From Rebecca billardiae RCC1528 (taxonomy: Eukaryota; Protista; Haptophyta), in contig OZ251230.1 in NCBI GenBank assembly GCA_965240325.2, positions 434,001-498,000 of the forward strand: DNA of 64,000 nucleotides. The letters run 5' to 3'. The notes beneath the pieces were generated by a model. That model did no database searches and was not told where the DNA came from. It saw only the letters and a list, made by a program, of their open reading frames with translations. How positions within the stretch are numbered: the first letter of the stretch is position 1; every line of letters begins with the position of its first letter. The translations under genes were made by a program, and so were the position numbers. Positions 7,328 to 19,467 of this stretch are shown piece by piece.

Positions 7328-7865
7328 CGCGCCCGCGCGCCGCGGCCGAGGTCCTCCCCGTTCCTCCGTCCACTGCGCAAGCGCTGCTCAAGTTCCACCG
7401 TTCTTCGAGGTTGCCGGATGGATGATGATTGGCGAGTGCCGAGTGAAAGCCCGATATGAATACTTGTATTGGTGGCGGCTGGACTTCTCATCGATGATAC
7501 GGTTTGGACTGATGATTAGATAATTGCGACCAGCGTGCGTGCTGCCGTGCTCTGCCCGAAAGCGTCTACTTGAATTGCTAATAATGGTACTGGTGGATCG
7601 ATTTGTTCTCAGCTAGATACAGGCGCTGATGATTGGCGAACGAGACCGAACTACATTAATTAGCGGTCATAGCCAAGTGGTGGGTGTAAGTACAGTAAGC
7701 CAATGAGGAGGCGGCGAAGCGGGTATGCTCCTATGCGAACAATCTCATACTCACTATCATAGACAGGGTCCCGATCTCACTTTCGTCAACTATGAGTCTA
7801 TGACAATCACAATCCGAGGCCGCGAGCTTCGCAAGCAGCCGTCCAGCGCAGTGGCGGCCGACAAC

Positions 7866-10800
7866 ATGGCGAACCGAGTGGACCCCGGTGACGGGCTAGG
7901 CAAGGCCTCGGCCCGCGAGCCGCTCCTGAATAACGGTGGCGACAATGCCGTGGAGCGCGCGGCCGCGTCCGCGCACCGCGCGCTGCGGTGCTTCTCCGAC
8001 CTCCGGCGCGCGCGAGCCGCGGCGACGGCGAGCACGGCGCACGAGCACGCCCACCCCAGGACGTCCAAACGGATGAGCATCTTGCGCAGCGGCGACGCCC
8101 ACCGCCACCCTCACCGCAACAAGGCTAGCCTCCACGTCACCTGGCGCACCGTCCTCGCCGGCGACGAGACGACCGTCGAGGACGCGCGCGCGCAGCAGCT
8201 CGCGGAGGCAGACGACCGTGAGAGGCGGCAACGAAAAAAAAACCTGACCAAGCTGGCGCGGCTGCCGACGCTCACGATCGAGGAGCTGATGATCCCGCTG
8301 CGCCTCGCCTTCCCGTACCGGATCTCGCACTCGGTGATCGCCGCCTGCCTCGACATCATCGGCGATCTGTTCGAGCTCGGCTGGGTGATCAAGATTGTGC
8401 GCGAGCAGCCGAGTGCAAAGGAGCTGATGGCTCGCGAGCTGCAGCGCAAGCAGATGGCGGAGGAGGCGGCGGAGGGCGGCACCGCGTCCGACGGCGCCGC
8501 CGTCGCGGTGGCGGACATGAAGGAGGCGGACGATTCGGTGTACACGATCATGCACGGGCTGCGCGACGTCGGCACGATCGTCTCGCTGCACTTTGCGCGC
8601 GTGCTGTATGTGTTCTGGGACGACAGCACGCTGTGGACGCTCGTGCAGGTGGTGCGCTGCCTGCGCGTGGGCCAGCTCGTCTCGTACGTGTCGCAGATCA
8701 ACAACGACCTGACGATGAACGTGAAGCTGCTCGCGGCGTACAAGTTCCTCCTCGTGCTCATCTCGGTGCCGCACTGGATCGCGTGCTTCTGGTGGGCGCT
8801 GCCGGCGGAGTGGACGGAGCCCGCGCTCGAGCTGCCGTCGTGGCCGGCGCAGGTGCCGCTCGTCACACACAACCCGGAGCTTGCGCCGCACGCCGCGCCC
8901 TCGGAGTGGTACAGCTACCTGATGGCGCTATACATGGCGTGGATGGGCCTCACCAGCATGGGGTACGGCACGATCGTCATCGCCACGCAGCAGGAGGTGA
9001 TCTTCGCCGCGTTGGTCGCGATGATCCAGATGGTGTTCTACGCGTTCGTGCTCGGCACGCTCTTCCACTACCTCGTGCGCACCGACGAGAACACGGTGCA
9101 CTTCAACGAGCTGATGAAGGCGGTGGACGAGTACGTGAGCACGCGCAAGCTGCCGCCCGCGCTCGCGTCCAAGATCCGCTCGCACTACGCCTTCCAGCAC
9201 CGCAAGCAGGCGGCGGGCACGCAGCGCATCGTCGCGCAGATGCCGCTGTCGATGCGCACCGAGGTGGCGGTCGCGCAGTACGCGCGCCAGATGCACGCGA
9301 CCTGGGCGTTCTGGGGGTGCACTCCGCAGTTCCTCTCGCACGTCGCGCTCTTCCTGCGCGAGCGCAACATGATGCCGTCCGAGACCCTCTTCAAGCGCGG
9401 CGACGTGGGCGCCGAGCTGCTGTGGTGCGTGGGCGGCTCGCTGCACGTGACCAAGGGCGAGGCGCACATCCGCACGATCCGCTCGGACATCGGCGCGGGC
9501 GCGATCGTGGGCGAGGTCGCGTTCTTCGTGGGCATCCAGCAGCCGTACACGGTGACGGCGACCTCGAACGGCGAGGTCACCCTGATCGTGCTCTCGGTGA
9601 GCGCCTTTGACGAGATCATCGGCTCGTACCCAGAGCAGACGGACCAGATCACGCAGAACCTGCTGCGCAAGTACGGCCTCGACAAGAACGGCGCCGACGT
9701 GCCCGGCGGCGGCCTCGCCGAGCAGATGGACGAGGGCGAGCTGAAGGAGTTCCTCGAGCTGCGCGAGGCCATCCGCACTGCCATCATCGAGCGCAACGAG
9801 GAGATGTTCGCGCAGATGGCGGATGCGGTGCACTCGGGCGACGTCGAGACGGTGCGCTCGCTCACGGCGCGCGGCTTTGACCTGAGCTCGGGCTCGTACG
9901 ACCTGCGCACGCCGCTGCACCTCGCCGCGCTCGAGGGGCACCGGCTCGTCGCGAAGGTGCTGTGCGAGCTCGGCGCGGACGTGTCACAGCTCGACCGCTT
10001 CGGCCACGCGCCGCTCAACGACGCGCTCGACGCGCGGCACGGCGCGGTGGCGGACGAGCTCGGGCGGTACGGCGCGCAGCTGCGGTGCGTGCGGCCGGCG
10101 GAGAAGCTGCACGCGGCGGCAAAGGCGGGTGACATGGAGCTGATGACGATGGCGGTGCGCCACGGCATCGACATCAACGCGCGCTCGTACGACGGGCGCA
10201 CAGCGCTGCACGTCGCCGCGGCCGAGGGCAACTCGCGCGTCGCCGAGTTCCTCGTGACCAACATGGCGGACGTGCACGCGCGCGACCGCTGGGCGCACTC
10301 GCCGCTCGACGACGCGATCCAGCACAACCACCCGCTGCTCGCGCAGATGCTCGTGCGCTCCTCCGCCTCCTCCGACCCGGGCACGATGGCCGAGCTGCTG
10401 CGCCGCGCCGCGGGCGAGGGCGACGTCGAGCGCCTCGGCTTTGTGCTGCAGATGGGCTGCAAGGTGAACGAGGCCGACTACGACCGGCGCACCGCGCTGC
10501 ACTACGCGGTCGCGGCGGGCTCGGTCTCCGCGACGCACGCGCTCGTCGCCGCGCTCGCCGACGTCAACCTCGCCGACCGCTGGCTGCAGCCGCCGCTCGT
10601 GCAGGCGCTGGACACGTCGCCGCAGATCGCCGCGCTGCTCGCGCGCGCGTGCGGCGCCTCGCTGCCCGACAGCGCGAGCGGCGCGGAGCGCGCGCGGCTG
10701 CAGGGCGCGCTGGACGCGTGCGCCACCCTCGACATGTACGAGCTCAACAGGCGCATCTCCGCGCGCGCCGAGCAGCGCGCGGCCAACACGGAGCTGCTCC

Positions 10801-13800
10801 TCGTGAAGGCGCGCGAGGTAGAGGTGTCGGTCAACGCGCTCGCGGACGCGATGGCGAGCATGGCACGAGCGCACCTCTCGCTCTTCCGCACCCTCGAGCG
10901 CTGGGCCGACATCTGGATCGCGGAGTACGGCGAGGACGACGGCGGCTCAGACACAGAGTCCTCTTCGGGCTCAGGCTCGGACGAGAGCGGCGGTGGCGGC
11001 GGCGGCGGCCGCGGCCGCGGCGCGCGGCACGCCGGCAGGCAGGGCGGCGGCGGCGCGGAAGGCGACGGCCGCGGGATGGCGAGCGCCTCCAAGCAGTTCC
11101 TCAGGCTGGTGCTGCAGCTGCCGCACGCGGAGAGCGGGCTGGTCCGGCTGAGCGCGCTGTTCCGAGAGCGGCTGCCCGCCGACGCGAACTGCGCGATGCC
11201 CGACGCCGTCCGGCGCGCCGAGGAGGAGCGCACGCTGCGGCACATCCTGACGTCCGTGCTGGGCGTGGACGCGCACTCGGCGGACGCGGTGCTCGCCGAG
11301 ATCTACGAGGAGCTGCGCGCGCTGCTCGGCGCCGCCGCGCCGATGCCAGCCGGGATGGGCGGTGGCGCGCTTGGGGTGCCTCTGCGCACCGCCGCCGACC
11401 GGCTCGCCGTGCCGCCGCCGTCGCAGCACGCGGCCGCCGAGCCATCGGCGGCGGCGCTCGCGGCGGGCGCGCGCGCAGCGGGCGCGCCCGAGGTGGCGAC
11501 AAGCGCAGCGGCTGCCTCGACGCCGTCGTCGGATGGCTCGGCCGCGGACGAGGGCAGCTCGCTGCGCTCGGACGAACAGCGGGACGGCTCGGCGCAGAGC
11601 GCCTCGTTCGGCCGCGCGGCCGCAGCCGCGGACAGCCCGCCGCAGCAGCGCGGCGACTCGCCCGCCACCGGCGGCGGTGGCGGCGGCGGCGGCAGCCCAG
11701 GCGGCGGTTCCGGCCGAGCCGGCGGCTCGTTCGAGCAGGGCTCGTTCCGGAACGACAAGGTGATCGACGTGCTGCGCCGCGGCTCGATGACGGGCACGAC
11801 GCTGGTCGACCTCACGCGCCATCTGCACCGCGGCTCGATCAGCGCGGGCAGCAGCTCGTTTCTGGGCGGCGCCGCGCCGCGCGCCGCCACGCGGCCGTCA
11901 CACGCCACGGTGGCCGCCGCCGTGGCTGCCACCAGGGCCGGTGCGGCGAAGCTCTCGCCGCGGCTGCAGCCTCTGGAGCAGGGCGCCGCCGACGACGACG
12001 CGTCCCAGCAGCCCGTGTACCTCTCCGACCTCGGCCACGTCGTGCTCTTCTGCTCGAGCACGCTGCTGGACGTGCTCGTACGGCGCTCGCTCGCGCGCTC
12101 GGGCGGCGCCACGCCCGGCACGACGCGCAGCAGCTTCGGCAGCCAGGGCGGCGGGAGGAGCGGGCGCGAGGACGGCGGCTCGTGGTCCGCGGCGGCCTCC
12201 TCGCCCCGCTCGCCGCCGCACTCCAAGCGCCTCTCCACCACCCTCGGCCGCGTGCTCCACTCGTTGGGCGGCGGCGGCGGCGCGCGGCACGGAGACGAGG
12301 GCTTGCAGGGCGACGCATCCGCCACGGCGAGCATGGAGGAGGGCGAGAGCGGGGGCCGGCTGCGCATGACGCTCTCGCAGCTGGCCGACGCGACGGGCAA
12401 GGACGGCGGCGGCCGCGCGCACGAGACGCTGCGCCGCGACGTGGAGGGCTCGGCGCGAATCATCCTCGCCCTCTTCCGCGTGTTCGACGCGGACGACAGC
12501 GGCGTCGTGCACATGCGCGACGTGCGCAAGCTGCAGCGCGAGCTGGGCGAGTTCGGCTCGGAGGAGATCCGCTCGCTGGTGACGCACCTGATGGACGCCT
12601 CGCGCGCGATGCAGCCGCGGGCCGAGCCCGAGCCCGCGCCCGCGCTCGAAGGGCGCCGGCTCTCTCCACTGGCCGAGCACGCCCGCGCAGAGCGCGCCGC
12701 CGGCGCGTTGCCGCCGGGCGGTGCGCGCGCGGAGAACCCGTTTGGCCTCTCCGAGGCGGCGCAGGCGCGGCGGCGGCGCTCGCTGAAGCACGGGCAGCGC
12801 AAGCAGCGCTCGCCGAGCGGCGCGAGCTCGACGCCGTCCTACCTCTCCCTCGGCGCGCCGCTGGGGTACGACCGTCCGTCCCCTGACGGCTGGGAGGAGG
12901 CGTCGCTGCCGCTCGAGGAGAGGCTCGAGAAGAGCGCAGAGGGGGCGGGCGCCTCCTCGGACGAGGCCGAGCTGCTCGAGGGCGCGGAGCTGTTTGCAGA
13001 CGCGGACGAGGCGGCCGAGCCCCCGCTTGGCGCGGCCGAGGCGATGTCGGACGGGCTCGAGCCGGGCACCACGGCGGGCGGCGGCGCGCAGCTGCGGCCG
13101 CGCGGGCGAGGCGCGGCGCGCGCCGCGGACGAGGCGCGCAAGCCGTCCTTCCTGTCGGAAGAGCAGCTCGCTGGCCCGACCGCCGAGCACGAGGCGCTGT
13201 ACGCATCGCTCGACGAGGCGGGCACGATCGCGCCCGGCGGCGCGGGCGGCGCCCCCGACGGCCTCGGCCTGCGCGGCCGCGCGGCCGCCGTGCGCTCGAT
13301 GACCAAGGTGCAGTTCTTCGTGGGCGTCTCCTCGTGGATCCTCGTCTCGGCGAGCGAGGTGGCACACCCGGACGAGGAGGAGGACGCGGTGGCGCGGGTG
13401 CGGCGGGAGGCAAAGGCGGCGCAGGACGCGCGCGCCTCGCGCATGTCCGCCGCGGAGAAGGCGATGTCCGAGCAGGAGGCGGCGGCGCGGCGGTCGCGCA
13501 AGCTCGAGGCGCACCTCACGCTCGCGATGGAGAGCGCCGCCGCCTTCTCGCTGCTCGCGGACAACATCCAGCACCGCGTGGACAAGGGGAGGGTCGGCGC
13601 GGCCGAGCGCGTGGAGAGTGGCGCGCTGCTCAAGTTCGTCGCGCACGCCGTCGCCATCCCCGCCTCCGCCCGCGCGGAGACCGTCGAGGCGTGGTGCGAC
13701 AAGCGGCTCGGGCTCACGCTCGAGAAGCAGGGCGCAGGCGCAGAGCAACGCGGCGGCGGCGGCGGCCCGCAGCCGCCGGAGGAGGCGCCGCTCGACGACG

Positions 13801-16800
13801 GCTCCAACTTCGGCGGCGACGTGGCGGGCGCGGAGGCGGCGGCGGCGGCGGCGACGACGACGTGGCAAGTGCTCATCGACGCGCTGCGCGACGAGGCGAC
13901 CGCGCTGCGCCTCGTCGAGAGCGGCGTCGACAGCGTCGACGGCGGCGGCGGCAGCGCGCGCCAGCGGGGCGGGGCGGGCAGCGGCCTGCTCGCCGCCGTC
14001 GGGCTCGGCGGCGGGGGCGGCGGGGGCGCGCGGCGCGGCGCGGACGGCGGCGGCGGCGGCACCGCCGCCGCCGAGCACGCCGCCGAGCCCGGCGGCGCGC
14101 CCGACTCTGCGTGGTACGTGATGAGCCGGCGCTCCGCGGTGTGCGTGCTCGTGCACCGCGCCTTCCTCGGCCTCGTGGTCTGGGACGCGCTCGTCGGGCC
14201 GATGTCGCTCGCGTACATCGACTGCTTCGCGCGGATGCCGTGGCTGTTCTACGTGAACTTTGGGATCGACGCGTGCTACCTCGTGCGCATCGGCCTTCAG
14301 TTCTTCACCTCCTTCGTCAACGAGAAGTCCGTCGAGGTGTTCGCCCCCGCGAAGATCTGGCGGCACTACCTGCAGCGCGACTTTGTGGGCGACGTGTTCG
14401 CGTGCTGGCCGCACGACAAGCTGGCGTGGCTGCTCGGCGCGGGCCCTTTCGTGCAGCTCTCGCTGCGGCTGCTGCGGTACGTGAACGTGCGCTACGTGCT
14501 GCGCGCGTGGGGCGCGTGGAAGCGTGGCCTCTCCCAGGCCGACTTTGCGAGCGGGCTGGTGCGCAACATTGCGCCGCTGCTATGCACCATGCACTACTCC
14601 GCGTGCGTGGCCAACGTGCTCGGCTACTCCAACCTCGCGCAGCGGCTGGCGTACACGACGTGGGCGGACATCTACGACCGCGAGCGTGACGCGCTGCTGC
14701 GCGGCAGCTCGAGCGAGTACGGCAGCCCCGAGGCCGAGCTCACCCACCACTACCTGACGGCGGTCTTCCTGGTGCTCTCGCTCATCACCGGGCTGGGGCT
14801 CGCGCAGCTGCCCGCCAACTACGCGGAGGCGCTCGCGTTCGTGCTGCTCGGCGTGACGAACATGACGATCTACGCGTGGGCGGTCGGCGGGATCTCCGGC
14901 CTCGTGATGAAGCAGGACGACGAGATCGTGGGCAAGCGCGCGCAGCTCGAGCTCGTCACCGCGTACGTGCGGCACATCCACGCGCCCGCCGAGCTGAAGG
15001 AGCGGATGGTGCGCTTCTTCCAGCACCGGCTGCAGACCACCTCGCTCTCGTCCGTCGACGCGGAGCAGATCTACACGGGGCTGCCCGTGCCGCTGCAGAT
15101 GGAGGTGGCGACGCACACCAACCGCGCGCTCGTCACCGGCTGCCTGCTGCTGCGCGGCTGCGCCGCCGGCTTCCTCGACCGGCTCTCGGCCGCGCTGCGC
15201 GAGCGCGAGCTCGACGCGGAGGCGGTGGTCTTCCGCGCGGGCGAGGCGTGCAAGGAGCTGCTGCTCATCGCGTCGGGCGTGGTCGAGCTGCTCGACGAGG
15301 GCGCGGAGGGCGCGGAGGAGGGCGGCGAGGCCGGGCTCGAGCTGATGGGGCCGGGCGACACGCTCGGCGAGGTGCCCTTCATCTTCTCGATCCGGCACTT
15401 TAAGACGGCGCGCGTGGGGCAGGAGAAGAAGGCGGTCACGTTCAGCCTCTCGCAGGAGCAGTTCAGGGAGCTGCTCAAGGCCTTTCCTTCGCAGGAGGAC
15501 GTGCTGATGGACAACGCGATGCGGCGGCACGACGGTGCGCGCGCCGCGCCCGCGCCCGCGTGCCGCGCGCCCGCGCGCGCCGTGCCGCCCACGCGCTCCG
15601 CGCGCGCGCCCCCGAGCGAGCAGGCATGTCGGGCGCTAAGTCGGTCCGCTCGGGCAGGTCAGCCGGGTCCAAGCGCGCCGCGTCCGAGGCGGGCAGGTCG
15701 GAGAGGTCGGAGGTATCCAAGTCGGCCGCGGGCGGCGCCAAGTCGGAGGTGGACGCCGGGCCGGTGACGGGCGTGGACGCGCTGCACAAGGTGCGGCCCA
15801 CGCGCCGTCGCGCGCGCGCGCGCGCGGCCGGGCGCAGCCACGGCGCGGCGGCGCACGGCCAGATGCGAGCCTCCGCTCTTCGCCTCCTCGCGCGCCTCGG
15901 CCCCGTGCTGCTGCCCGCGCGCAGATCCTGACCGAGGCGAAGCGCAAGCGCGAGGAGCTGCTCCACTCGCGGCTGTGCACCGCGTGCGCCAAGGGCGACC
16001 TGGAGAAAGTGCGCCGGCTGCTCTCGGGCCGCGCGTCCGACGTGGACCACGGCGACTTTGGCGGCCGGCGCGTGCTGCACCTGGCCGCGTGCGGCGGCGA
16101 GCCGCGCGTGATCGAGCTGCTGCTCGGGCAGAAGGCGGACGTGAACGTGGAGGACGCGCAGGGCTGCACGCCGCTCGACGCCGCGCTGATGGCCGACAAG
16201 GAGGCCGCCGCGGCGCTGCTCGCCAGGCACGGCGGCCGGCCGGGCTCGCGCGACGTCTCCGACCACGTGTGCACCGCGGCCGGCGACGCGGACGGCGGGC
16301 GCGACCTCGCGCGGCTCTGCCAGTACGGCGGGAACGTGAACGCGACGTCGAGCGAGGGGCGCACCGCGCTGCACATCGCCGCGTCCGAGGGGCGCGCCGC
16401 CAACGTGCGCAAGCTCCTCGAGCTGCGCGCGGACATCAACGCGCGCGACGCGCGCGGCTCGACGCCGCTGCAGGACGCGCTGCTCGGCCGTCAGGACGAG
16501 GTGTGCGCGCTGCTGCTGCAGAGCGGCGCCGCGCTCGGCGAGCTCGACGTGGCCAAGGCGCTGAACACGGCGGCGGCGGCCAACGACACGGCCCACCTCG
16601 GCCGGCTGCTCCGCTTCCGCTGCGACGTCAACGCGCAGGACGGCGTCGGCCGCTGCGCGCTGCACCTCGCGAGCGCGTCGCGCTGCGTGAACGCGACCAG
16701 CCTGCTGCTCGACGCGGAGGGCGTGGCCGTGAACGCAGAGGACGCGCACGGCAACACCGCGCTGGACGACGCGCTGCGCGAGGGGTGCGCGGAGCAGCGC

Positions 16801-17561
16801 GTGCTCGTCGCGCTGCTCGAGTCGCGCGGCGCCAAGCCGGGCTCGCACGCCAAGCGCGCGCAGCTCGTCGAGCGCCACACGGACGTGGAGGAGCGCCGAG
16901 AGCAGCAGACGGCCGACACGATCCAAGCGCGCGACGCGACGCTCGGCCACGCGACCGAGCTCTCGGCCTGGCTCGCCGAGGAGCGCGCCGCGGGCTCGGA
17001 GTTCAGGGCGCAGCTCGACGCGGCGGTGCGGCTGCAGCGCGAGCACGGCGCCGTGCTCGCCGACGAGCTGCCCGAGCTGTGGGCGCAGGTGCACGCGTAC
17101 GCCGAGGGCTTCTTCGACTGGCGCGACGACGCCGCGTCGGACGTGCGGCGCGTCGTCGAGCGCATGGCCAGCGACACGACCGACTTTGCGCTCATCTCCG
17201 CGCACAAGCTGCTCGCCAAGGTGCGCCGCGCGCCGCGCGCGTGGCCACACCGCGTGCGCGCCGCTCGGCGCGGCCGCACACGCGGCCCCGCATCGCGCGG
17301 TCGCCGCCAGGCTACTGACCAATCCCACCACCACCGCGCGCGCGCCGCTGCGCGGGTGTGCGCGCACGCGGCCGTCCACCATGCTGGACTTGGCGCCCAC
17401 TCCTCGACGCTGCGGCCGCTGCGCAGATGGACGACATGCTGGAGATCGCGAGGAACGAGGCCAAGCCGCTCGAACGGCTGTACGAGGTCACGTTCCGCAA
17501 GCCGAGCAAATCCTCGCACAGCGGCCCAGACGGCAAGCCGCCTTGGAACCCGAATGCGTGA
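7866..17561 (+). CDS. Tandem two-module cyclic-nucleotide-binding-domain/ankyrin-repeat cation (K+) channel, Shaker/AKT/SKOR-like; exons 7866-15534, 15624-15790, 15925-17220, 17427-17561
   Basis: Module 1: TM helices, pore TSMGYG (8952-8969), C-linker, CNBD (GEVAF), ankyrins ([11 protein letters not shown]). EF-hand-like FDADDSGVV at ~12480. Module 2: TM helices, pore TGLGLA (14787-14804), CNBD (GEVPF), ankyrins. Three GT-AG introns keep the frame. Confidence 0.88.
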
Positions 17562-17658
17562 GCAGCATGCAATTGCAAGTCGTGGCACTGATTGAGTAGT
17601 GATTACTGATTGACGCGAGCGGCGGTACGGCGCGGGCGCCGTAGACGGCAACTGCTCG

Positions 17659-18220
<562 letters not shown>

Positions 18221-18493
18221 TATTATAATATATATATTCATATATATATATAGCTTATTAGTTATTGCAGCAGTCTATATATACTATTAGCAGGATGAAG
18301 GCGTGCACACAACTCAGGCGGCACCCTCCTATCAGCTCTCAGTCGTCAGCACAGATCGACACAGTCGCCTGCTGGGCGAGCACGCTCGCCGGGACGTGGG
18401 CAGTATGCTGTCGTCAGTGCGCGCTGTATGCGTGTCACTCGACTGCTACTTGCTGCCCGTGATGATCAAGACATCAGCCGTTGTCGCACGCCG

Positions 18494-18678
18494 TCAAGCC
18501 GCGGGCGCTGGCGTGGTCTTCGGCTTCATGGGCGCCTTGCCTGCCTTGTTGGACGGAGGCGGTGCGGTCTCCGTGTGCGCCCTGCTGCTGCCGTCAGATT
18601 TGGCGGCGTCGCTCGTGTCCTTGACGCGAGCCGGGGCCGCGGCGCGCTGAATCAAGCCCACCTTGATCTTCTTGGGCT

Positions 18679-18734
<56 letters not shown>

Positions 18735-19174
18735 GCGAGAGCCTCCGGCGGCACGACGACCGTCAGCACGCCGTCCGCCAGCTCGGCGCTGATCTTGTCC
18801 ACGTCAGAAACCGCGCGAGGCAGCGAGACCGAACGTGTGGCGGATGCGTGGCCGTTGGCGTCGGCGCGCTTGGCGTGGACGGTGAGGAGGTTCGAGTCGG
18901 CATCAACGTTGACGCTGATCTCAGGGTAGCCCTTCAGCTCAGCGAACGTGTACTTGAGCGTCTTGGTGCCGTCCGCGCCCTCGGCCTCGACGCGGATGGC
19001 CTTGTCAGCGTTGTGCGCGCAGCGCGCGAGCGCAGTGTCGAGCTCGGCGAGGGGGTCAACGAAAGGGGCGAGGCTGAACGGGTCGAACGTCACGAGAGGG
19101 TCATGCGTACGCATGCGCCGCGGCTGCGTCGAGCGCGCGAGGGGGAAGAGCGGCATCGGCGAGAGGGCGAACAT
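18494..19174 (-). CDS. HSP20: Small heat shock protein (HSP20/alpha-crystallin domain), copy A, 226 aa
   Basis: RSVSLPRAVSDVDKISAELADGVLTVVVP alpha-crystallin motif, (PE)n linker, C-terminal IKV (IXI/V) motif. Confidence 0.9.
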
Positions 19175-19243
19175 GGCGGGAAGTGTCGTTGAGCGGGTGT
19201 CCTTCCGCGGGTGGCGTCGGTCGGCGTCGGAGCGGTCGTTGGC

Positions 19244-19397
19244 GTGTGACCGCGCTGCGAGATTCAGATTTTCTTCGGACAGGTCGAGACGCGAGTCGCT
19301 CTCGACGACGCGCATCTCGACCTGGCAATTTTCCGAAACTTCTGAGCGAGCCTGGCTTCTGAGCAAGCTCGAGCGCGTGGCCTCACTTTGGAACCTG
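19244..19397. promoter_or_regulatory. Shared bidirectional promoter of the HSP20 pair with a minimal HSE-like GAAacTTC (19335-19342)
   Basis: Only unique sequence between the two divergent genes; the HSE match has just two perfect nGAAn units. Confidence 0.45.
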
Positions 19398-19467
19398 GCC
19401 AACGACCGCTCCGACGCCGGCCGAGACGCCACCCGTCAAGGACACCCGCTCACCGACACTTCCCGCC

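Follow-up and report, generated by a model that had tools for sequence, protein, structure and literature searches.

Two unlike cyclic nucleotide-binding domain channel units in series in a predicted membrane protein of the haptophyte Rebecca billardiae

Introduction

How would two different ion channel units be arranged around a pore if they were carried by one and the same polypeptide chain? This question is raised by a gene of the haptophyte Rebecca billardiae RCC1528 that lies on contig OZ251230.1 (GenBank assembly GCA_965240325.2). The window considered here is the whole stretch of 64,000 nucleotides that was analyzed (positions 434,001 to 498,000 of the forward strand), and all positions below are counted from its first letter. 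As predicted from its sequence, the locus is an intact gene for one membrane protein in which two different channel units, each followed by a cyclic nucleotide-binding domain (CNBD) plus ankyrin repeats, stand in series (Table 1). The hallmarks of the CNBD-channel superfamily are six transmembrane segments (6TM) with a P-loop, a C-linker and the CNBD fold; Ion_trans or Ion_trans_2 and cNMP_binding are each found twice in the protein by Pfam, and both units have matches in the PDB. A first-pass annotation of the same DNA had described a protein of about 3,000 residues with two modules of this kind and had proposed that it forms a dimeric channel with two types of selectivity filter.

Gene model

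The window has a base composition of 56-80% GC per 2 kb. An open reading frame (ORF) of 2,680 codons occupies positions 7725-15767 of the + strand, and the GC content at third codon positions (GC3) is 0.87-1.00 in a single frame from about 7850 to about 15540, a stretch that covers the linker region between the two units as well. GC3 is only 0.44-0.58 on the 5' side of the ATG at 7866, and this fall makes that ATG the likely start. Beyond 15540 the coding signal shifts to the second frame and then to the third. Three GT-AG introns with 5' ends GTGCG[CG] and 3' ends CAG bring the frame back, and the spliced junctions match uninterrupted homologue sequence, which in the relative P0002 reads ...QEDILMDNAMTQHEGLMTSRSGKSK...KVINIAKRKRED... 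at these places. The whole coding sequence thereby comprises four exons and 9,267 nt, spans 7866-17561 on the + strand and ends with a TGA stop codon at 17559-17561.

The spliced model encodes 3,088 residues, and the Pfam families for the channel core, cNMP_binding and Ank each match twice, so that the size and the two-module architecture given in the first-pass annotation stand. The end that it had placed at 17561 is the TGA of the spliced model. Searches and folds were run exon by exon or unit by unit, on separate exon sequences. The linker contains no 2A-like skipping peptide, and a second channel gene was not found within the 64-kb window.

The two channel units

The best solved match of unit 1 is to the plant outward rectifiers GORK and SKOR, with which it aligns from S4 on (E 7e-27). 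The candidate for S1 is only mildly hydrophobic. S4 of unit 1 aligns with GORK IRLFRVRKV and carries two Arg residues where GORK has R, R, R and K, and the pattern Q-x-x-R-x-x-R is kept in relatives. The selectivity filter of unit 1 lies on the TVGYG of GORK. Both the reduced charge of this S4 and the K+-type filter had been seen in the first-pass annotation and are confirmed by these alignments. The cassette of the first CNBD (CNBD1) pairs with that of GORK's cyclic nucleotide-binding homology domain, or CNBHD (QP[YF]TV; GORK GDISIICNISQPFTV), the homology-domain type without the phosphate-binding Arg.

Unit 2 has hERG as its best solved match (E 2e-22), followed by GORK (1e-18), and the best solved relative of its CNBD (CNBD2) is the CNBHD of mosquito ERG (4l11). 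An AlphaFold model of unit 2 from a 13-sequence alignment (pLDDT 81.3) contains S1-S6, a pore helix followed by the filter loop, the C-linker and a beta roll. Foldseek searches with this model return whole-chain matches to GORK, HCN1, CNGA and AKT1. The re-entrant pore helix, on which the case for a second channel module hinged, is thus predicted to be present (pLDDT 81). On this model, with its pore helix and a fold shared throughout the CNBD-channel family, unit 2 is a proper channel unit. Pfam places further ankyrin repeats in an exon after CNBD2 (16009-17592). From the pore to the CNBD, units 1 and 2 are 24% identical.

The filter region of unit 2 aligns over LTSVGFGNV of hERG, and alignment of one unit against the other sets TGLGLA on TSMGYG. 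The first-pass annotation had called this second filter degenerate. Since the motif T-x-L-G-[LVI]-A-Q is kept in close relatives, the word does not fit, and the filter is better described as conserved and non-canonical; the stretch that close relatives share in repeat 2 is [ST]-x-L-G-[LVI]-A-Q-[LV]-P. As judged from the aligned homologues, the asymmetry of the two filters is conserved.

The S4 segments of both units have few charges. The cassette of CNBD2 reads G-E ... K-T-A, with a Lys at what we take to be the position of the canonical Arg, and the residues of relatives at that position are K, K, T, H, A, R, N, K and Q. Classical gating by cyclic nucleoside monophosphates (cNMP) appears doubtful because CNBD1 is of the homology type, the Arg position of CNBD2 is not conserved and the nearest solved relative of CNBD2 is the ERG homology domain.

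The linker

The first-pass annotation had described a low-complexity linker of about 1,000 residues that contains an EF-hand-like loop. The linker has a length of about 1,145 residues and is compositionally biased, as described; it also contains conserved islands and so is of low complexity only in part. No Pfam family is found on the linker above threshold. Its final approximately 400 residues are also found N-terminal to the channel core of a single-unit relative (P0008), and thus behave like an N-terminal domain of unit 2. Two further stretches of the linker, at 12024-12080 and 13308-13364, are conserved and moderately hydrophobic (Kyte-Doolittle about 1.4). They may form a hairpin that associates with the membrane, or buried parts of a domain that folds.

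The EF-hand-like loop is present, at a score below the Pfam threshold (EF-hand_6, 16.7 bits against a cut-off of 25), and the motif is unpaired. The loop of the window gene has D1, D3, S5 and D12; in the closest relatives, positions 3 and 5 carry no such ligands. The helix-loop-helix around the loop is the sole island of the linker that is weakly detectable in P0078 of the green alga Bryopsis and in P0056. An Atlas feature search of the linker returned EF-hand clusters at 0.87-0.89, which are counted as a lead and not as evidence. Ca2+ sensing by the window gene is a weak possibility and does not appear to be a secure trait of the family.

Table 1. Predicted features of the channel gene, in positions of the window
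Feature	Position	Strand	Evidence or remarks
Exon 1: unit 1, linker and unit 2 through CNBD	7866-15534	+	2,556 codons plus one base; no stop codon; GC3 0.87-1.00
Transmembrane core of unit 1: S1 candidate (weak), then S2-S6, pore helix	8253-9080	+	Hydropathy; Pfam Ion_trans_2; GORK/SKOR alignment
Unit 1 S4, VRCLRVGQL	8652-8678	+	Two Arg only
Selectivity filter 1, TSMGYG	8952-8969	+	Aligned with GORK TVGYG
Unit 1 C-linker and CNBD, CNBHD-like	9081-9701	+	Pfam cNMP_binding; cassette aligned to GORK GDISIICNISQPFTV
Ankyrin domain 1	9783-10700	+	Pfam Ank families; 35% identity to and collinear with ankyrin domain 2
Inter-unit linker	10701-14132	+	Length about 1,145 residues; Ala, Gly, Ser and Arg abundant; conserved islands
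EF-hand-like loop	12486-12521	+	Pfam EF-hand_6, sub-threshold
Unit 2 transmembrane core: S1-S6, pore helix	14133-14915	+	Pfam Ion_trans; hERG/GORK alignment; AlphaFold2 model
Unit 2 S4	14457-14504	+	Sequence comparison with relatives
Selectivity filter 2, TGLGLA	14787-14804	+	Aligned with hERG SVGFG and with unit 1 TSMGYG
Unit 2 C-linker and CNBD	14916-15534	+	Second Pfam cNMP_binding stretch
Intron 1	15535-15623	+	89 nt, GTGCGC...GAGCAG; frame change; junction agrees with P0002 and P0003
Exon 2: Ser-rich, leads from CNBD2 to ankyrin domain 2	15624-15790	+	GC3 0.91, third frame; homologous to SRSGKSK stretch of relatives
Intron 2	15791-15924	+	134 nt, GTGCGG...GCGCAG
Exon 3: ankyrin domain 2 (about 15925-16824), then helical tail	15925-17220	+	Pfam Ank families
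Intron 3	17221-17426	+	206 nt, GTGCGC...GCGCAG
Exon 4: C-terminal tail with family-conserved motif, TGA stop	17427-17561	+	Homologue comparison

Relatives and descent

The closest named homologues of the window protein are from Diacronema lutheri, whose genome has 73% GC and 45% single-exon genes (PMC8379373); the searches turned up no protein identical to that of the window. The order unit 1, linker, unit 2 is found in D. lutheri KFE25_007711 (2,650 residues) and KFE25_008060, in three proteins of Rhodelphis marinus, in Cymbomonas tetramitiformis KAK3264010.1 and in Bryopsis sp. GMH40854.1. It is also found in MMETSP transcripts of 2,647 and 3,020 residues, in P0006 and in P0007, an intronless ORF that three metagenome assemblies, independent of one another, contain in identical form. 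The JGI contig L001 (8,395 nt) consists almost entirely of one two-unit ORF of 2,704 residues with short transcript-like flanks, and the transcript-like contigs L001, L005 and L006 each carry both units. The JGI samples appear to be transcriptomes, given the shape of the contigs and the fact that P0021 is identical to an MMETSP transcript. Word-based searches that used unit 1 alone or unit 2 alone gave fragments only.

Two candidates for proteins with unit 2 only were rejected. P0003, an ORF from MMETSP, consists of the last 1,773 residues of P0021, and the contig of P0021 (L005) opens with the ankyrin domain of a unit 1, which is 56% identical to that of the window gene, and then has a frame change of one base. 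Upstream of P0009 stands a complete unit 1, and only runs of N part the two (L006). Broken models and ORF calls of this kind recur among the public sequences. In KFE25_007711 (P0001) of D. lutheri the second ankyrin domain and part of S5 are missing, the model KFE25_012280 is incomplete and gives no ankyrin matches, L005:700-800 contains the one-base frame change, and the N runs in L006:2330-3060 break one transcript into two ORFs. The inventories of algal channels under-count the family because gene callers split or truncate its genes, as in the D. lutheri models, P0003 and P0009.

A single-unit relative of repeat 2 is P0008 (L007:385-8088), in which N-terminal PAS domains and an RGS domain precede the channel core, its CNBD and the ankyrin repeats. 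The JGI sample that yielded it also yielded the two-unit contigs L001 and L006, and in the tree P0008 is nested within the repeat-2 clade.

An exhaustive profile search gave 22,227 matches at E <= 0.001, and pore-bearing repeats were counted in 161 proteins, which are the best 150 of these matches together with earlier ones. Two repeats are found in 39 of the 161 proteins, four in 33, three in 14 and one in 48. The three-repeat proteins are probably truncated. Four-repeat CNBD-channel proteins, with about 1,450-3,130 residues, are about as frequent as two-repeat ones among the nearest representatives.

The two-repeat proteins are split into two classes. Members of the ankyrin-bearing class have ankyrin repeats after each channel repeat and a long linker, with lengths of 2,056-3,013 residues in the listed examples. 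The ankyrin-less class has short linkers, and most of its members have TVGYG-like filters in both repeats. In four of the ankyrin-less proteins (P0080, P0100, P0156 and P0157) one repeat has a normal S/T-T-V-G-Y-G-D filter and the other has VVVVIGD, in an order that varies between proteins, so that their filters too are asymmetric, in another way. In 12 of the 15 listed members of the ankyrin-bearing class the filter Gly of repeat 1 is followed by a Tyr, and repeat 2 has G-Y-G in none; a Tyr is found there only in P0032 of Rhodelphis.

When the modules are placed in a tree separately (IQ-TREE), the repeat-1 and repeat-2 clades stand apart with support of 100/100 each, and the branching within one matches that within the other. 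It follows that the units were joined by duplication or fusion long ago and that the two halves diverged together. A wider tree (FastTree) unites the ankyrin-bearing class in a single clade (support 1.0), inside which repeat 1 and repeat 2 each have a subclade (0.999 and 0.97, respectively), and this clade stands apart from the ankyrin-less tandems and from the four-repeat proteins. As regards common descent with the dinoflagellate and oomycete tandems, the separation from the ankyrin-less proteins is seen in a tree that is midpoint-rooted, has nameless comparison sequences and gives a low support of 0.30 on the other side. By these trees and its predicted architecture, the window gene probably belongs to an old ankyrin-bearing branch of the tandem CNBD channels.

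Neighborhood of the gene

An AT-rich spacer (29-41% GC) lies just 3' of the stop codon and contains two tandem copies (17659-18221), 99% identical, of a block of about 250-318 nt with a long (TA)n run. The downstream neighbor on the - strand (18494-19432) encodes an Hsp20/alpha-crystallin domain protein (Pfam E 2e-5) that also has a Pro-Glu repeat.

Arrangement of the two units

The reading that fits these observations best, and which is held with moderate confidence by analogy with other channels, is that two chains dimerize and form a weakly selective 2+2 pore of alternating units 1 and 2 that is gated through the CNBD-ankyrin region. Four pore domains would then surround one pore in which TSMGYG and TGLGLA alternate, as pore domains are shared between two chains in two-pore channels (TPCs) and two-pore domain K+ (K2P) channels. 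With the Tyr and the second Gly missing from two of the four filter strands, the outer K+ sites would probably be distorted, and the protein would then more likely conduct cations with weak selectivity than be strictly selective for K+. Filters with two ion sites, such as that of NaK, are non-selective (PMC9822992). Strong voltage sensing or classical cNMP binding is less likely to govern gating than are the CNBD-ankyrin layer in the cytosol and the conserved domains of the linker, because both S4 segments are poor in charge and both CNBDs look like homology domains. In GORK and SKOR the symmetry drops from four-fold (C4) to two-fold (C2) through the CNBD-ankyrin layer (PMC12742848, PMC10313817), and covalent pairing of units would lock the C2 arrangement that these tetramers take transiently.

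Several points weigh against the paired arrangement. KtrB has a non-canonical filter and is still K+-selective (PMC6888753). As non-canonical filters can stay K+-selective, the selectivity of this protein cannot be read from its sequence, and the authors of a 2020 survey of tandem CNBD channels likewise argue that sequence does not reveal selectivity (PMC7576140). The linker, at about 1,145 residues, would be long enough to let each unit enter a separate homotetramer. The existence of P0008 suggests that repeat-2-type units may function without a fused repeat 1. The single mRNA of the locus is inferred from the reading frame and the relatives. In the AlphaFold2 model of unit 1, helices are visible at a pLDDT of 61 and the CNBD does not resolve, so that the model is too weak for judging S1 or the cassette.

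The main rival explanation gives each type of unit a tetrameric pore to itself. Four chains would then build one K+-type pore from unit 1 and one pore from unit 2, as tethered twin channels that the linker holds at a ratio of 1:1. The great length and partial disorder of the linker, the lone repeat-2-type unit of P0008 and the low identity of the two units from pore to CNBD (only 24%) would all suit such an arrangement. It is nonetheless thought unlikely, as the repeat-2 filters of P0006 and P0009 have a four-residue deletion that is hard to square with a homotetrameric conduction path, and the strict co-divergence of the repeats in distant lineages fits a shared functional unit better. The locus might instead give rise to separate subunits, through an internal promoter, an alternative transcript or proteolysis of the linker, and the units would then heteromerize freely. 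Such products would be favored by the nineteen in-frame Met codons that the linker and the edge of S1 contain, and by the last approximately 400 linker residues, which behave like an N-terminal domain in units of the repeat-2 type. The complete two-unit ORFs on transcript contigs make such a split quite unlikely, and the apparent unit-2-only proteins P0003 and P0009 are artefacts of ORF calling whose contigs carry unit 1 or the unit 1 ankyrin domain.

A slightly lower probability still is given to a non-conducting unit 2 whose pore is closed or vestigial and which serves as a regulatory or scaffold module, or conducts via its voltage-sensor domain in the manner of HCNL1, the precedent for this route (PMC7306766). 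Filter 2 is non-canonical and, across the wider family, very variable, which favors this reading; its motif is nevertheless conserved in close relatives, and the pore helix, S6 and C-linker of unit 2 are well conserved and confidently modeled. That the gene is an artefact, either a chance read-through of two adjoining genes in a GC-rich genome or a mis-assembly, is very improbable. Long spurious ORFs do occur in every frame of the GC-rich DNA of the window, but coding-type GC3 is found in one frame across the linker, conserved islands lie inside the linker, and the fused order recurs in many independent genomes and transcriptomes.

The preferred 2+2 arrangement can be extended to a bolder proposal, which is tentative and on the doubtful side. 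Haptophytes, green algae and Rhodelphis would share an ancient covalent heterodimeric Shaker-like family with a 2+2 filter of Tyr-bearing and Tyr-less strands, always of two strands each and hard-wired by nature, which would pass cations besides K+, such as Ca2+, under the control of a conserved EF-hand-like domain located between the repeats, and would represent an independent, TPC-like origin within the CNBD-ankyrin lineage.

Comparison with known channels

Two-repeat tandem CNBD channels were described in 2020 from dinoflagellates and oomycetes; the word ankyrin is absent from that paper, and no tandem is reported in it from haptophytes or Archaeplastida (PMC7576140). The window class resembles these tandems (PMC7576140) in having two 6TM-CNBD repeats per chain and separate, congruent repeat clades, and both are known from sequences only. 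The published tandems have TVGYG-like filters in both repeats, whereas repeat 2 of the listed members of the window class is never G-Y-G. From their architecture, the ankyrin-less proteins found here appear to correspond to the published dinoflagellate and oomycete tandems. Literature searches returned no description of ankyrin-bearing tandem CNBD channels. By its predicted architecture the ankyrin-bearing tandem class is distinct from the ankyrin-less TVGYG/TVGYG tandems of 2020. With it, tandem CNBD channels reach beyond SAR (stramenopiles, alveolates and Rhizaria) into haptophytes and Archaeplastida.

The plant Shaker channels GORK, SKOR and AKT1 share with the window protein the domain order, the CNBHD cassette without Arg and the ankyrin repeats after the CNBD. 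Plant Shakers have one unit per chain, form homotetramers with four identical GYG filters and end in a KHA tail. The window protein differs from them in having two units per chain, one non-GYG filter and a charge-poor S4, and KHA gives no Pfam match in it at E <= 0.01. Tandem CNBD channels are thereby tied to the plant Shaker type, with its CNBHD and ankyrin repeats, whose tetramers switch between four-fold and two-fold symmetry. For the channel core of unit 2 as well as for its CNBD, the best solved relatives are KCNH channels (hERG, EAG). These channels bear a PAS (eag) domain at the N-terminus, and PAS domains are likewise N-terminal in the single-unit relative P0008. KCNH channels differ from the window protein in their GFG filter, in having one unit per chain and in lacking ankyrin repeats.

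CNBD-channel repeats are also joined on one chain in CNGK of animal sperm and choanoflagellates. CNGK has four repeats to the two of the window protein, its linkers are short, it has no ankyrin repeats and it is placed elsewhere in the tree. TPCs have two 6TM repeats and function as dimers, and the linker between the repeats of plant TPC1 bears EF-hands. They have neither CNBD nor ankyrin repeats and are kin to the window protein at the level of the superfamily only, and the window protein has a single EF-hand-like motif below threshold. Engineered concatemers are the usual tool for studying ion selectivity in tetrameric cation channels. A natural chain that fixes GYG and non-GYG filters at 1:1, and that has been kept across distant algal lineages, makes a two-fold asymmetric filter directly testable.

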